Position numbers and translations under genes: made by a program. The notes below the pieces were generated by a model, which had not been told where the DNA came from, ran no database searches, and saw only the letters and a list, made by a program, of their open reading frames with translations. Positions 28,992 through 38,324 of a stretch of DNA of 64,000 nt are shown one piece after another (the stretch's first letter is position 1; every line of letters begins with the position of its first letter). Location of the stretch: the NCBI RefSeq assembly GCF_000142905.1, contig NW_013657665.1, positions 374,039 through 438,038 on the forward strand, given 5' to 3'. Source of the DNA: Thecamonas trahens ATCC 50062. Lineage: Eukaryota > Protista > Apusomonadida.

Positions 28992-31480
28992 ATGATGCAG
29001 AAGAACAAGGCTCGCTTGCGGAAGGAGCCGCTGCGCAAGCTGTGGGAGCCGTCCAATGTCGGTATGTTGGGTTGAGGGTGGGTTGGGTTGGGGGGGGGTT
29101 GGGGGTCATGGTGTCGTCACTGCAAGAGAAGACGGAGGGGTGTGTGTGAGGGAAGGGGGGGAGGGGAGGGGAGGGGAGGAGGGAGTGAGGGGGGAGGGGG
29201 GAGGGGGGCGATGACTCATGTAGAAGAGGTCGTTGGTGTGTGTGCTGCGTGCTTGGTCACGGGGCTGTTGCTGCTGCTGGCTGCTGGCTGGACGCTCGTT
29301 GACGTTCGACGTGCCGACGCTGATGCTGATGGGTGGCGATGATGGGTGGCTTTGGGGTGCGTGGGTAACAGATCCATATCCCCTCTCGGGATCTCACTCG
29401 TCGTCTATCGAGTCGCAAAAGGCATCGCTCCCGGCCCGGGTGTTGCACAAGGTGTACGGCATTCCCTATGGGCCAACGTCGCGGATGGTGGCGACGGCGG
29501 CGAGCCAGGTGTTCCCGCTCGGATGGCTTCGCCGCTACGGCCGCAGTCAGCTGGGTAGTGACATTGTGGCCGGCCTAACCATTGGCATCATTCTTGTGCC
29601 GCAGGCCATGGCTTACGCGCTGCTGGCGGGCCTCCCACCGCAGTACGGGCTGTACACCGCCATCTTTCCGGCGCTCATGTACGGGATCTTTGGCACGGTG
29701 CCGAACCTGTGCATAGGCCCGTTTGCGCTACTCTCGCTGCTTGTGGCCGAGGCCGCGTCTGCAGTTTCGGGTGAGGACGGCGGAACGGATGCGTCGCAGC
29801 GGTACATCGAGGCGACCATGCTGCTGTCGTTTTCACCGGCCTGGTACTCTGCGCCATGTCGACGCTGCGGATGGGCTTTGTCACCGTCTTTCTCTCGCCG
29901 GTCCTCATCTCGGGCTTCACCACCGCATCGGCCATTCTTATTGCCACGTCGCAGCTGAAGCACGTGTTTGGCCTTCGCCCGCCGCAAATTGACGGCTTTT
30001 TGAGCCGTTCCGGACCATATACTGGCTTCTCTCTCATCTTGACGAGGCCAATGTGGCCGCGATTGTCATTGCTGTCGTCGCGGTCCTCCTCCTCTTTGGC
30101 ATTCGGTATCTCAACACCAGGTTCAAGGCCCGGCTTCCGATGGCGATCCCGTCCGAGTTTGTGCTCCTTGTTCTCGCGCTTGTCTTCTCCAAGGCGCTGA
30201 GCATAGACACGCGGTGGGACGTGAACGTGGTTGGCTCGATTCCGGGCGGCTTGCCGTCGCTCACGGTCCCAAGCCTCGGCTCGGACATGGTCGGTGCTGC
30301 GTTGGCCAACTCGATCATTCTTGCTGTCATTGGGTTTGCCGTCTCTATTGCCATCGGCAAGACTTTTGAGAAGCAGCTTGAATTGAGCGTCCGGCCCAAC
30401 CAGGAGCTACTCGCCATGGGCATCGCCAACGTGTTTGGCTCGTTTCTACTCTCGTATCCGTCGTGCGGCTCACTCTCACGCTCGGTTGTCTCGGCCGAGT
30501 CGGGCGTCAAGTCGCCGATCAACATCCTGTTCTCGTCGACGCTAGTGGCTATCATTGTCGCCGTCCTAACCGGGCCGTTTGAGGCCACGCCTCAAGCCGT
30601 CCTTGCCGCCGTCATTCTGGTAGCGCTCAAGCGGCTCCTTCTCCAGGTCCGCGAGCTCCCGGCACTGTACCGGATCAAGCGGGCCGACGGCTTGGTCTGG
30701 GCCTTTGTGTTCACCGCCGTTCTGGTTGTCGGCGTCACCGAAGGCCTCATCCTCGGCATGGTCTTCTCGCTTCTCATTGTGCTGTACAAGCAAATGCGGC
30801 CGTACACGGCGGTGATGGGCCGGTTTCCAGGCACCAGGCTCTACGGCTCAGTGGCGCAGTATGGCGACCAGGTCGTCGAGTGGCCGCGCATTAAGATCGT
30901 CCACTTTGGTGCCGAGCTCTTCTATGCCAACGTCGCCTTTTTGGAGGACACGATCGAGGGCGTCGTCCGCTCCACCCCGGGCCTGGCCGCCATTGTCCTC
31001 GACATTTCGACCTTTTCCGACATCGACATCTCGTCGGCGCGCGACCTCTCTCGCATCCACGCCGACCTAACCGACCGCCACATCCGGCTCCTCTTTGCCC
31101 ACCCGCGCAAGCGGCTCCGCTCGCTCTTTGCCGCCGAAAAGACGGTGCCCATCGAAGACATGTTCATCGACGTTCACGACGCCTGCCTCTACGCCATGGA
31201 AGTCGGTCCCATCGTCCCTGACGCCACAGACTCGGACTCGAACGGATCGTCCACCACGGCTGCCATCTGGCCGGGCTACGGCTCGGTCGGCTGGAGCCCC
31301 ATCCCTAGCGTTGTCTCGCTCTCATCCGACAGTGAGCCGACCACCACCGCTCCGTCGACGCACGCCGAGCCATCAACGGCCATCTCGGGCCACCACCGCT
31401 CAGCACCCTCTTCGGCGCCAAGCAGCGGCATTTCGTCGTCGTCAAGCTACTTGTCATCGTCGGCCTCACCGACCGTTTAG
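28992..31480 (+). CDS. SLC26/SulP anion transporter with STAS domain; intron 29062-29371; two 1-nt frame breaks (29830-29833, 29997-30001)
   Basis: DIVAGLTIGIILVPQAMAYALLAGLPPQYGLY, GFTTASAI, NQELLAMG, SLSRS, and STAS motifs LFYAN and IVLDIS. Confidence 0.9.
29062..29371 (+). other. Spliceosomal intron (SLC26)
   Basis: G|gtatgt ... taacag|AT, phase 1. It joins MMQKNK...SNV to DPYPLS. Confidence 0.75.
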
Positions 31481-31767: not shown

Positions 31768-34700
31768 ATGAACGTGACGTTTTCAGACACAGTGTCGGTA
31801 GTTGGAGACGAGGGAGGCGGAGGCGGCGGTGGAGACCGAGGCAGAGTCGGGAGAGCCGCCGCGAGCGGGGCAGCGGTCGCCACGGCGGCGTACCCGTTGT
31901 CTGGCACGACGAGGACGGCAACGACGGGAGAGGTAGATGCAGACAAACCGGCTGGTGTGGGAGACGGAACAGCGGTGGCTGCTACCAACGGAGCAGCTTT
32001 GCCTATGGGCGCTACCCGAACGGGCATGGCGAGCGGGCAGGGAAGGCTTGCCGACGGCCACGCCTTTGACGAGATTGCGTGGAAGGACCTCCGAGTACGT
32101 TGATCTTGGCTTGGCAGGGCGGGGCGAGGGGCGAGAGTAACTTGGACCAGTTGATGGTGCGTAGACTCACGGTGCTGTGGATGTGTGCTCGGTACAGATC
32201 ATCCGCAAGGTTGGCACCGGGGGCTTTGGCGACGTCTACGCTGGGATGTGGGGCGGGACGCCTGTGGCGATCAAGAAGCTCAAGACGAGCTCGCCGCATG
32301 GGCCAACGCCGATGATGACAACACCGACGGGCTCGGTTTCGCGACCGGCGTTCGGTGACGGAATGACAGCGTCGTTAGGTGGCGCCGGGACGCTTACGGC
32401 TGGGACGTGGGGCGGCGGCGGCGGCGGCGGCGGTGGCGGCGGTTTTCGGCATGTGGGTGGCGGCGAGACGGGAGGCGACAATCATGTCCGCGGAGACAGG
32501 GCTACTGTTACTGAGACAGAGCCCGGGTTGCCGGTGGCGGCTGCCGGAGAGTCGGATGGCGTTGGCAATGGCGGCGGGCGGACAGGACTTGTTGTGTGGG
32601 GCGAAGACTCGATTGCGCCCGAGCACCGGGCATCGTTTTTGGCGGAAGCACATTCGCTGTCGACGGTCAACCACCCCAACTGCCTGCAGTTGCTGGGGTG
32701 CTGCACCGAGCCGCGACACCTATGCATTGTGACCGAGTACTTGAAGGAGGGCGATTTGGCGACGCTCTTGTTCAACTCGGACGAGCTGATTGGCGACGCG
32801 AAAAAGGTGTCGATTCTGGCGCAGATTGCGCGCGGGTGTGAGTACCTGCACCTCCGCAAGGAGATCGTGCACCGCGACCTCAAGCCGGGCAACATCTTGC
32901 TCGACCACTCGGCGTCGGTGGTCAAAGTCGCCGACTTTGGCCTCTCGGTCCTTGTCTCCAAGCTCCAGGACGAGCGTGCGCGGCGCGGCGGGACTCACAA
33001 GTACATGTCACCGGAGCAGCTACTGGGTGGCGTGACGGCGTCACGGGCCTCTGATGTCTTTTCGTTTGGCGTCATTATGTACGAGGTGTTGACTCGGCAG
33101 CGTGCCTTTGACCGTGAGCGATGGGTCAATGTCTACGCGCGCCCTTCGCTCGAGGCGACGGTACCGCACTCGACGCTCTCGCTGATGCTTTCCGACTTGC
33201 TAGAGGCTACGCTCGCGCCGAATCCCGACGACCGGCCGGACTTTACGTCGATTGTGGCGGTGCTAGAGGATTTGAAGAGCAAGCTGGTGTACGGGCCTGT
33301 GTGGCCGTCTGTGCCTGCACTGCCGCCTGCATTTGTGCCTGTCGAGCGCGACCTTGATGCGCTGCGGCAGCTGGTCTTGCGCGCCCGGCGCCCGCTGCTG
33401 AGCGGCGAGAGCCGTGCGCCACTGCCGTCGCCGATGGCGGCTTGGACGCCGCTGGGCTCTGAAAGCGGCAGCGAGTTTACCAGTCCGGGCTCGTCGTCGT
33501 GGTCGTCCGAGGCTGAGTCGCCAACGGCATCGGTTCTTTCGACAGGCTCATGGGCTGCGAGCAACGCACCGGGCGGGGTGTTTGTTGTCGGCCCGGCCGG
33601 GCGCGGCAAGTCTGTACTTGCGGCTGCGCTTGCGCGCGACGAGACGATCCGGCTTGCCTTTCCGGGCGGATCGCACTGGATCACGCTGGGCCCTGCGCCG
33701 CGCATTCCTCAGCTCCTCGCCAAGCTCCGGCAGGAGATGCTCGGCTCGAGCGAGAGCGATGACGACGGGTCGGACAACAGCGGGTGGTCGGGCGGCGGGC
33801 CGCCGCCGCTTGTCCGAGCCGGCTCATCGTCCGAGGCTGCTATCCCGAGTGATCCGCTGCTCTCTGTCCGGGCGCTCCGCGAAGAGCTTCGCGAGCTGTT
33901 CAACGAAGCCGGTAAGCAAGCGCTGCTAGTGTTTGAGGACGTTGTCTCTGCCTCGCACTTGCTGCCGTTCCTTGACGTGGCGGCGGGCTCGGGCTCGTTT
34001 GTGGTGGCCAACACCCGGAGCACGGGCCTTGCGGCGCGACTGCCTGGCTGGGACGAGTTTGTGCTCGAGGGCCTAGAGGCAGAGGCGTCGCTGGCGGTGC
34101 TGGCCAAGGCGTCGCGGCGCGGAGTGGAGGCACTTCCGCGTCCGGCACGGGCCATTGCACAGCTCTGCGGTCGGTTGCCGCTCTCGCTGGCGATGCTTGG
34201 TGGCCTGCTCCGGCACTGCGCCCACGAGTCTGAGTGGGCCGAGGTTGCGCGCCAGCTCCGGGACCTGGGCGCCGGTGCTGGATCGGCCATCCACGTTGCG
34301 GTCCTTGCCCTCGGCCCGCTGCGGTACCGCTACCTGGACCTTGCGGTTTTCCCGGCGACGATGCCGATTACGCTCGCGGCGCTGGAGGCGATGTGGTCGG
34401 TTCTCCCCGAGCCGCTGACCCGGTCCGACGTGAAGATTGTCGTTGACGCGTTTGTGGCCAAGGCGCTCGTGGTTGTCGACGGCTCCGGCGACCTCATTTT
34501 GCACCAGTTGCAGCGCGAGTTTCTGTTGGAGCAGGCTGTGGCGTCGGGCGAGTTGCGCAGCATGCGGGCGCGGCTGTTTGAGGGCTTTGAGCCGCATGCG
34601 TCGCGGCTGCGGCTTCAAGAGATCGAGTTCCTGAAGGCCATGTACTGCCGCGACGGCGAGTTTGAGATGGCAGCGCACATGTGTGAGTACGTCGAGCAGT

Positions 34701-35943
34701 ACGAGGCTGCCGTCGATGTGGGCGACCCTGCGGCAAAGCTGCGCGAGGTCCAGTTCTCGATTTTCTTCGAGGTCGACATCCCAGCGCCGGCATTGCCGGT
34801 GGCAGACGAGGGCGACTCGGGCGAGGCATGCGGCGACGAGTGCGGAGCTGGCGACGAGCCGCTCGCTCCCGAGCAGGCACGAATCGAGCTGGAAGCCTCG
34901 CTGGTTGCCGGCTACCCGTTCCTTGTCCAGCCGAACGTAACCATCCGGTCGAGTGCGTTGTCGCGGAGCGGACAGGCCTCGATCATGGCTCAGATGCAGA
35001 GCTTCCTCGACTCGGTGACGCAGCCCGGCGAGCTGTGCGTCTCCCGGGCAGTCGAGTGGGTGACGGCCAACGTGCTGCGGTTCCTCGAGCACTCGGCGAC
35101 CAAGCGGATGCGCGCGAGTGCGAGCGATGGCGGCAAGAGCGCGGGCAAGGGCAAGGGCAAGGGCAAGGGCAAGGGCAAGGGCAAGGACAGTGGCAAGGCG
35201 AGCAAGAGTCGAAACATGGGCAGTCGACAGCCCGCCGTGGTTGTGCCGCCGCGCGGGCGTCCGAGCTCGCTGCTGGTCTCGCCGGCACTGGTACGGCGGT
35301 CGACGAGCATGGACGCCATTGCTGGCGATGCGGCGACGGACGCGTTTGCGTTTGGCTGGCGCGGCTGGCCGCGGATGACGTCGCCGCGGATGGGAGCGGG
35401 CGCGGGAGCTGGAGTTGGAGCGGGGCCGGAGCCGGAGCCGAAGCCGGAGCTGGAGGCGGGGCGATAGGAGCCGCGAGCGGCAATAGCCTCGAACGACAAG
35501 TGTCGCCGTCGCCGTCGACGCCATCATCGAGCTCGCTGCTTGCCCACGCGCAGCAGCGCGAGTGGCTCACCTTTCCCAAAGCCAACTTTAAGGTTGTGGC
35601 GCCCAAGGCGCTCGAGTCTGCGCGCAAGCATTTGCTGACGGGCTTTGTGGTCTCGACCTCTCCATCAGTGGTGGTGTTTGAGGGCGAGGCGCCTGCGGTC
35701 GAGGCGGCCATCGCGTGGCTCTACACTGCGCTGGACAACTCGTTCATTGTCGCATCGTTTGTGCGCAAGTGGACGGAGCGGTGCGTGTCGCGGCGTTCAG
35801 CAGCGACCTGGCTCCGCTTTGAGCGCTTTGCGCTCTACGGATACTCACGCGGGCGGGCGCGCAAGCGGTTCCGCGCCGTTCTCGATGCCTCAGGCTGCGG
35901 CGGCGTGTTTTTCAAGGTCACCGGCATCGAGTATACCTCGTAG
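31768..35943 (+). CDS. TKL kinase - NB-ARC (STAND ATPase) - RWD - DUF1115 fusion protein; intron 32095-32197; 1-nt frame break near 35345-35353
   Basis: Kinase: GTGGFG, VAIKKL, HRDLKPGN, DFG, GTHKYMSPE. NB-ARC: GPAGRGKS, LLVFEDV, LCGRLPL, LHQL. RWD: QEIEFLKAMY...YPFLVQP. DUF1115-like: LTGFVVSTSPSVVVFEGE. Confidence 0.85.
32095..32197 (+). other. Spliceosomal intron (kinase-NB-ARC gene)
   Basis: EIAWKDLR|gtacgt ... actcac ... gtacag|IIRKVGTGGFG restores the TKL kinase entry. Confidence 0.9.
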
Positions 35944-36222
35944 TATGAATCGCAACAGTGTTGCTCTCGCAATGGCAAGTGTCGCGAGGGGAGAAGAACA
36001 AAAGTCGAGCAGCCGCCAATTGAGAATTTTGATTGAGGCCTGCAAAAACATCGCCGGGTGACGTGAGCGCAGAGCGGGAGGAGCGGTAAAAGTCACCATT
36101 TCTCTTCCCCAAACCAACGTACGAAACGGCTGCCGCGTCAATCCCAGGCCAATAGTTGGCCTTCCCCTCGCACCCTTTCCCCCCTCCCACTCACACTCTC
36201 TCCTTGCTTGTTCCGGCTACAG

Positions 36223-38324
<2,102 letters not shown>

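Follow-up and report, generated by a model that had tools for sequence, protein, structure and literature searches.

An RWDD2-like module in the predicted sensor position of an NLR-like kinase–NB-ARC gene from Thecamonas trahens

STAND/NLR proteins are modular, and it is the C-terminal domain that decides what gets detected. What, then, could be detected by a protein of this class whose C-terminus resembles RWDD2A and RWDD2B, proteins conserved from algae and fungi to humans for which we know of no function? Here we address this question for a predicted plus-strand gene that spans about 31768-35943 of a 64,000-nucleotide window from the protist Thecamonas trahens ATCC 50062 (NW_013657665.1; C15:374039-438038 of a 28.7-Mb assembly in 131 contigs). 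The window, meaning the whole stretch of DNA that was analysed, is GC-rich eukaryotic DNA (about 64% GC), and positions of the gene are given in its coordinates. Judged by its sequence, the locus is one gene of the STAND/NLR-like class with roughly 1357 codons, predicted to encode a protein of about 1357 residues. We propose, by analogy with other members of the class, that this is a STAND kinase protein whose RWDD2-like tail would act as a sensor or autoinhibitory module, and we put the probability of this reading at about 0.55.

Profile, homology and fold searches were run on separate pieces, with the exons and the two reading frames described below left unjoined, and the longest translated frame scanned was 32177-35464. 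In this frame, a TKL-like Ser/Thr protein kinase at 32198-33262 (plus strand, as are all features of the gene) is matched above cut-off by PK_Tyr_Ser-Thr (PF07714; E 1.7e-46, 159 bits) and Pkinase (PF00069; E 4.5e-46, 158 bits), in agreement with its motifs and with homology to a paralogue, L001. The Gly loop (32213-32236), VAIK (from 32264), the alphaC Glu within FLAEA (from 32636), HRDLKPGN (32870-32893), DFG (32933-32941) and SPE (from 33008) were located, and the beta3 Lys, alphaC Glu, HRD Asp and DFG are all kept. The original prediction of an apparently intact TKL kinase is borne out by these Pfam E values of about 1e-46 and by the catalytic residues, all of which are in place and are more canonical than in three of the four kinase-headed paralogues of the genome; the group label comes only from PF07714 scoring level with PF00069, and we word it as TKL-like. 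Between beta3 and alphaC lies a G-rich insert of ~100 codons (32291-32611) with a flat G+C content at third codon positions (GC3, 0.65), which may contain an unrecognised intron or non-coding sequence (in-phase GT..AG candidate at 32379-32585).

The kinase is followed by an NB-ARC domain (NBD plus HD1, 33563-34273), identified by PF00931 (65.6 bits, E 5.3e-18, cut-off 23.5) and by alignment with paralogues and bacterial homologues, and then by a winged-helix part (34274-34591) recognised from BLASTP to L001 and from alignment, its last stretch being collinear with that paralogue. All of the motifs first quoted for this region could be placed, namely the P-loop GPAGRGKS (33590-33613), the RNBS-A-like FPGGSHWITLG (33659-33691), Walker B LLVFEDV (33923-33943), the GxP motif GRLPL (34169-34192) and the winged helix; sensor-1 ANTR lies at 34001-34021. 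The domain retains the P-loop, one Walker B acid, the sensor-1 Arg, GxP and the His of MHD, and carries an acidic/G-rich insert of about 45 residues. A database search matched it best to bacterial NB-ARC–TPR/WD40 proteins, at 33% identity and E 1e-28.

Directly after the NB-ARC comes, as had been claimed, an RWD domain with an acidic loop insert (34610-35068). PF05773 scores 27.3 bits in the whole frame (cut-off 22.8) and 33.4 bits (E 5.6e-8) in the piece 34580-35100 alone, and the motifs EIEFLKAMY (from 34616) and YPFLVQP (from 34913) are present. A phmmer search of this domain against all PDB chains, with E up to 10, returned only 2DAW (RWDD2A, 1.4e-5) and 2DAX (RWDD2B, 3.5e-5), the blocks conserved with RWDD2A/B being YP.., ..RS..LSRS.Q and GELCV..A.EWV. 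As a control, another RWD from the same genome matched RWDD1, IMPACT and RWDD3 instead. Language-model (atlas) features placed the domain with RWD clusters at a score of 0.90. By these matches, we assign the RWD to the RWDD2 type.

What the module stands in for can be read from the rest of the genome, in which at least 21 NB-ARC matches were found. Four come from kinase–NB-ARC–WD40 paralogues (L001/C30, L006/C53, L013/C3 and L014/C11); the remaining set comprises a larger TIR–NB-ARC–WD40 group and one Ank–TIR–NB-ARC, and there is also one P-loop (AAA_16)–TPR protein. The closest paralogue by BLASTP is L001, with 49% identity in the kinase and 35% over the NB-ARC and winged helix, and in the NB-ARC tree the two genes are sisters (support 97/91). 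Their similarity stops 8 residues short of the RWD, at residue 804 of the long frame. Exactly at this point L001 continues into APAF1_C and then WD40 repeats, whereas the gene studied here continues into the RWD, and the boundary of the swap is therefore that between winged helix and HD2 (WHD|HD2). Domain content, sister relationship and swap boundary are each shown by the sequence data, as is the continuity of the frame described below. Aligned in this way, the RWDD2-like module occupies the slot of HD2 and WD40 in the four sister genes, in keeping with the claim that a sensor slot holds an RWDD2-type module; a check for paralogues with different C-termini likewise found these four collinear genes.

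Could the RWD belong to a neighbouring gene? A kinase–NB-ARC gene followed by a separate RWDD2 gene with an internal start, or a misassembly joint between two loci, would draw on an in-frame ATG (Met at 34562) that lies 16 codons before the RWD, and on the interval 34966-35198, including a (GK)n-encoding repeat, which short read contigs do not bridge. Against this, the winged helix runs into the RWD without a stop, gap or non-coding stretch, and GC3 stays at 0.82-0.84 across the junction. The junction at 34610 is also crossed by two independent contigs, one from run X2 (33477-34712) and one from run X3 (34102-34965), so it is no misjoin. We find two genes read as one hardly credible; Pfam, the continuous frame and the collinear paralogue all uphold a single NLR-like kinase–NB-ARC gene.

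The same kind of contig settles a break in the reading frame. The original prediction had placed a (GK)n linker and a 1-nucleotide frame break after the RWD. The linker is there, encoded as a basic peptide by a (GGCAAG)11 microsatellite at 35132-35198 (Tandem Repeats Finder, as for the next repeat); the break is present in the assembly, in which a stop at 35465-35467 closes the long frame and leaves the final ~170 codons in a different one, but it is not biological and is repaired by read contigs. A second microsatellite, (GGAGCC)n at 35393-35459, encodes (GA)n and holds a G-run at 35422-35425, and in this run one contig each from X2, X3 and X4 has a single extra G ("behind 35421"), the contigs being otherwise identical to the assembly over 35199-36200 (X3: 35205-36008). 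One added G shifts the upstream frame into the downstream frame, which is open through the stop at 35941-35943. Runs X2, X3 and X4 come from a single sample of this organism, which may have been the source of the assembly, and we count them as one line of evidence; since one of their contigs passes unspliced through the intron of the gene, they appear to be low-coverage DNA and not RNA. We take the downstream frame as coding, since its GC3 of 0.79 exceeds the 0.60 and 0.51 of the two alternative frames and falls within the 0.78-0.84 measured for the kinase, the NB-ARC, the winged helix, the RWD and the C-terminus; the neighbouring ATP synthase beta gene has 0.81. The frame break is an assembly error or strain indel, and no feature of the gene. 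An intron was considered as its cause and rejected, as no AG in 35466-35501 is in phase with a GTACGG donor at 35291 and the contigs carry the extra G. Other apparent frameshifts in this assembly may be errors of the same type as the missing G at 35422-35425.

The restored frame leads into a C-terminal domain that resembles DUF1115/Prp3_C (35557-35940, frame +1 relative to the upstream assembly frame, followed by the stop at 35941-35943). Here the profile evidence is weak: PF06544 (Prp3_C, formerly DUF1115) gives 13.7 bits (E 0.067) over profile positions 18-49, below the cut-off of 27.6, and is thus the only one of the profiles checked, after kinase, PF00931 and PF05773, to fall short of its Pfam cut-off. 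An hhalign comparison with a profile of the genome's two PF06544 proteins covers the same core at E 5.8e-4 and a probability of 29%. In a comparison of language-model features, every one of the ten top-scoring clusters that bear a family label is PF06544 (score 0.85, 175/256 shared), and in an alignment of three sequences collinearity extends from the L(T/S)G..V(V/M)V.(E/R)G core through a W.R(F/R) motif. The C-terminal piece gave a low-complexity match alone in a phmmer search of 1.84 billion representatives, and none in PDB. AlphaFold2 models of the piece reached a pLDDT (the predicted per-residue confidence) of 39 alone and 52 with a 3-sequence alignment, too poor to use, and Foldseek on the latter returned noise (best E 0.23), which leaves structure uninformative either way. 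Taking these lines, each of them weak, together with the RWDD2-type RWD directly upstream, we consider the domain to be probably DUF1115. Of the claimed pairing of an RWDD2-type RWD with DUF1115, the first half stands, with RWDD2A/B as the only PDB matches, and the second is only probable, given weaker lines and a sub-threshold profile.

Several points weigh against the reading of the protein as a STAND kinase with a sensory or autoinhibitory tail, beyond the sub-threshold score and poor models just described. Walker B is ED where DD is expected, and the MHD/LHD position (34493-34513) reads LHQ, with the His retained and the Asp changed to Gln; together these alterations could mean relaxed constraint or a changed switch. 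Because the His at this position is absent in three of the four kinase-headed paralogues, LHQ is best seen as within-family variation, and not as exclusion from NB-ARC/STAND. The NB-ARC branch of the gene is twice as long as that of its sister (1.17 vs 0.58), and since the assembled sequence carries the frameshift, a truncated allele may exist. Protein and metagenome searches found no orthologue that would show the fusion to be conserved. The transcript-type match amounts to one 247-nucleotide contig from a seawater metatranscriptome, 100% identical over 34237-34483, and nothing further; what can be read from it is that this organism, a very close strain of it or its DNA is present in seawater. 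Ligand sensing by the tail is conjecture, drawn from its counterparts in Apaf-1, NLRs and bacterial STANDs. The weight of the case is limited in that this is a single orphan gene for which expression and comparative support are both scant.

Some of the same features would suit a decaying or neutral fusion, in which loss of the WD40 region left a kinase–NB-ARC paralogue reading into a copy of RWDD2; the product would by now be under drift and, in the sequenced strain, perhaps a pseudogene already. The frameshift of the assembly, the long NB-ARC branch, the altered Walker B and MHD and the lack of orthologues found can all be cited for it, as can several low-complexity inserts with flat codon-position GC. 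We nevertheless hold drift to be improbable. The frame is whole in three read sets; their extra G leaves the second exon open for 1248 codons, for which the chance is about 1e-14 at a stop frequency of roughly 2.5% (a hand estimate from base composition); the kinase catalytic residues are all intact, above the standard of three of the four paralogues; and each folded domain, the C-terminal one among them, shows strong GC3 periodicity.

A different history would make the tail an integrated decoy: the RWDD2 copy would mimic a host RWDD2 attacked by effectors of a pathogen or virus, and modification or binding of this bait would release the NB-ARC. The genome does contain a standalone gene with RWD-like and DUF1115-like parts on contig C26, and its sizeable STAND repertoire, including TIR–NB-ARC–WD40 genes, would fit an immune system. 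The standalone gene (L017:4253-5071, minus strand; C26 about 132252-133070) encodes 272 residues, with an RWD-like N-terminus that Pfam missed and a sub-threshold PF06544 match of 23.8 bits. It is a poor counterpart to the supposed bait. By BLASTP, the two share only a 30-residue opening motif (E 3e-5), with ~20% identity in the C-terminal domain, and the standalone protein had no RWDD2A/RWDD2B match in PDB, unlike the integrated copy. Compared in this way, the C26 gene appears to encode a very divergent RWDD2-like protein and the integrated copy to be the more canonical RWDD2, which is why it is hard to see the latter as a recent capture that mimics a standalone target. Searching the genome with the RWD and C-terminal pieces returned the gene itself and no second copy. 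The module also replaces the repeat sensor and is not an addition, so that the pattern of plant NLRs with integrated domains (NLR-IDs) is not reproduced: no repeat domain is left, and the standalone candidate target is only remotely similar. RWDD2 is not known to take part in any host–pathogen interaction. We regard a decoy as distinctly unlikely.

Beyond this genome, a search with the NB-ARC-to-RWD region returned only bacterial and metagenomic NB-ARC–WD40/TPR proteins, matched in the NB-ARC part alone and none of them with an RWD. Two metagenome scans yielded no relatives, and a word-indexed protein search with the RWD-plus-linker piece and the C26 protein gave no matches, a blank that its word prefilter makes weak. 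Full-text literature searches found no paper describing an NB-ARC or NLR with RWD, nor RWD as an integrated NLR domain. According to the original prediction, this architecture is not known to have been described, and no similar protein, locus or paper came to light; the architecture therefore looks undescribed and uncommon, as far as blanks of limited reach, from sequence searches rather than domain-architecture queries, can say. The gene is a variant of the STAND/NLR-like class, and it is the domain combination itself that looks undescribed.

How might such a protein work? In Apaf-1, NLRs and bacterial STANDs, a C-terminal domain holds the nucleotide-binding oligomerisation module (NOD) closed until a ligand releases it; the molecules then oligomerise, and their N-terminal effectors become active through being brought close together, a mode of activation that comes naturally to a kinase. 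We suggest that an ancestral kinase–NB-ARC–HD2–WD40 gene was duplicated, and that in one copy everything past the winged helix was lost and replaced by a copy of a whole RWDD2-like protein. The kinase would then be the output, and the NB-ARC and winged helix the ADP/ATP switch and oligomerisation core, while the tail, made up of the RWD, a basic GK/GA linker and the DUF1115/Prp3_C-like domain, would keep the NB-ARC closed until a partner binds. The partner might be a protein, recognised by the RWD, or single-stranded RNA, recognised by the DUF1115-like fold; its binding would be followed by nucleotide exchange and oligomerisation, gathering kinase domains for trans-activation.

The tail might also serve to place the protein and read no signal at all. 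The RWD is a non-catalytic E2-like fold, which GCN2, IMPACT, RWDD1, RNF14 and RNF25 use to dock on GCN1, and GCN2, like the gene studied here, unites an RWD and a kinase. The RWD would accordingly position the kinase on a fixed partner (GCN1, the ribosome), with the NB-ARC as timer or scaffold. RWD domains are known as protein-docking modules, several of which bind GCN1 on stalled ribosomes, and a comparison of human RWD proteins with respect to GCN1 binding includes RWDD2A and RWDD2B (PMC10931611). In that comparison, however, GCN1 binding by RWDD2-type RWDs is a prediction only, and the tail sits in the canonical STAND sensor position, where the sister genes have WD40. A pure docking role is in our view possible but unlikely.

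A more far-reaching version can also be put forward: the tail itself could sense a ligand and so link a STAND kinase to translation or to RNA surveillance, with the RWD on GCN1 at collided ribosomes, or the linker and DUF1115-like fold on free single-stranded RNA ends as in Prp3, triggering oligomerisation and kinase firing. The DUF1115 of Prp3 is an expanded ferredoxin-like domain that binds single-stranded RNA, aided by a preceding basic peptide (PMC4520091), and a basic (GK)n peptide likewise precedes the DUF1115-like domain here. We offer this version as a long shot. If it were true, the gene would combine an NLR scaffold with stress or antiviral logic of the GCN2 or ZAK kind and provide the first functional clue for the conserved RWDD2 family.

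The interest of the locus is that a whole RWDD2 protein in place of the WD40 of sister genes is a clean natural domain swap, and that its fusion to a kinase–ATPase switch hints, in "Rosetta stone" fashion, that whatever RWDD2 binds merits a signal. The small genome of this marine protist holds at least three STAND architectures (kinase-, TIR- and Ank-TIR-headed), a variety of relevance to the assembly of NLR-like immunity in lineages other than plants and animals.

The 5' part of the gene consists of exon 1 (31768-32094), which opens at the ATG at 31768, and an intron. The final 11 codons of the exon, AFDEIAWKDLR, form the start of the kinase domain and match AFDEIHPRDLK of L001, with identical spacing to the Gly loop. 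Its initial ~95 codons are of G-rich low complexity with flat GC3 (0.64-0.65), so that the 5' end of the gene is uncertain and coding status is unsupported for most of the exon; a Pfam scan of exon 1 gave no match. The phase-0 intron of 103 nucleotides (32095-32197; GTACGT...ACAG, GT..AG) does not figure in the original prediction; it was read from the sequence and is well supported by homology, because L001 reads through with identical spacing. From 32198, after ..GGTACAG, a 1096-codon frame proceeds with IIRKVGTGGFGDVY, and the closest paralogue has an uninterrupted AFDEIHPRDLKLTRLLGTGGFG, spaced as in the spliced gene. Splicing would yield ..DLR|IIRKVGTGGFG, collinear with the unspliced paralogues, and GC3 within the intron is 0.47. 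On either side of the gene, translations of open reading frames point to an apparent C-terminus of a SulP/STAS-type anion transporter upstream (30053-31480, plus strand) and an apparent mitochondrial-type ATP synthase beta subunit downstream (36735-38324, plus strand), both of which seem to have no relation to it.

The other NB-ARC genes of the genome provide observations of their own. In the NB-ARC tree, the kinase-headed genes cluster with bacterial NB-ARC proteins, apart from the TIR-headed family. The string GKSVLAAALARDE is common to the kinase-headed NB-ARC genes and a cyanobacterial protein (L001, L006, L013, L014 and window positions 33590-34600 compared with P0001, P0003 and P0007), and the bacterial or metagenomic protein P0007 is itself a kinase–NB-ARC–WD40 protein; horizontal transfer of this whole architecture is possible. 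The TIR–NB-ARC–WD40 genes form a near-identical family (tree branch lengths 0.007-0.14), several of them fragments, within 2-6 kb of contig ends (L003-L005, L008-L012 and L015, at C49:2803, C97:5068, C71:3346, C59:2472, C17:3065, C57:1654, C64:191878 of 195173, C22:454943 of 456871 and C70:113150 of 114015). This arrangement suggests a subtelomeric STAND family that was recently amplified or homogenised. Contig C70 (L004, C70:108500-114015; L007, C70:64700-74699) holds three NB-ARC genes: one is Ank–TIR–NB-ARC, and a second is an open frame with WD40 repeats ahead of a divergent NB-ARC, perhaps a read-through of two neighbouring genes. Short repeated Pfam matches to DUF2203, CATRA-C, BLUF and DUF1918 within the WD40 arrays of L005, L008, L010 and L012 look artefactual, the motif being highly repeated.

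Set beside known systems, the predicted protein shares with Apaf-1/CED-4-type STAND ATPases the NBD-HD1-WHD core with its P-loop, Walker B, sensor-1, GxP and MHD-position His, and, with these and with bacterial NB-ARC–WD40/TPR proteins, the order of an N-terminal effector and a C-terminal sensor slot. Unlike the Apaf-1/CED-4 type, it is without HD2 (APAF1_C) and WD40/TPR, has an RWD and DUF1115-like tail in their place, and reads ED and LHQ at the two altered motifs. Its own kinase–NB-ARC–WD40 paralogues are collinear with it through kinase and NB-ARC up to the end of the winged helix, after which they continue with APAF1_C and one or two WD40 propellers to 1900-2400 residues, whereas the gene studied here continues with the RWDD2-like module to about 1357.

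Plant NLRs offer two further likenesses, since in wheat Tsn1 (kinase–NBS–LRR) and barley Rpg5 a kinase is fused to the NB-ARC, and in NLR-IDs such as RRS1-WRKY a non-repeat domain of a host protein is embedded; in the NLR-IDs, however, the LRR is kept and the integrated domain is added, while here the repeat domain is gone. GCN2 also carries an RWD and a Ser/Thr kinase on one polypeptide, but its RWD is N-terminal, its regulator is HisRS-like and it has no STAND ATPase; the likeness shown is one of domain folds. With RWDD2A and RWDD2B the tail shares an RWD that matches only these two among PDB chains and, probably, the domain order, its C-terminus having a sub-threshold likeness to PF06544. 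RWDD2 proteins stand alone, at a length of about 290-320 residues (PMC10931611), whereas in the T. trahens gene the module, with its long GK/GA linkers and acidic RWD loop, forms the predicted C-terminus of a kinase–STAND protein.

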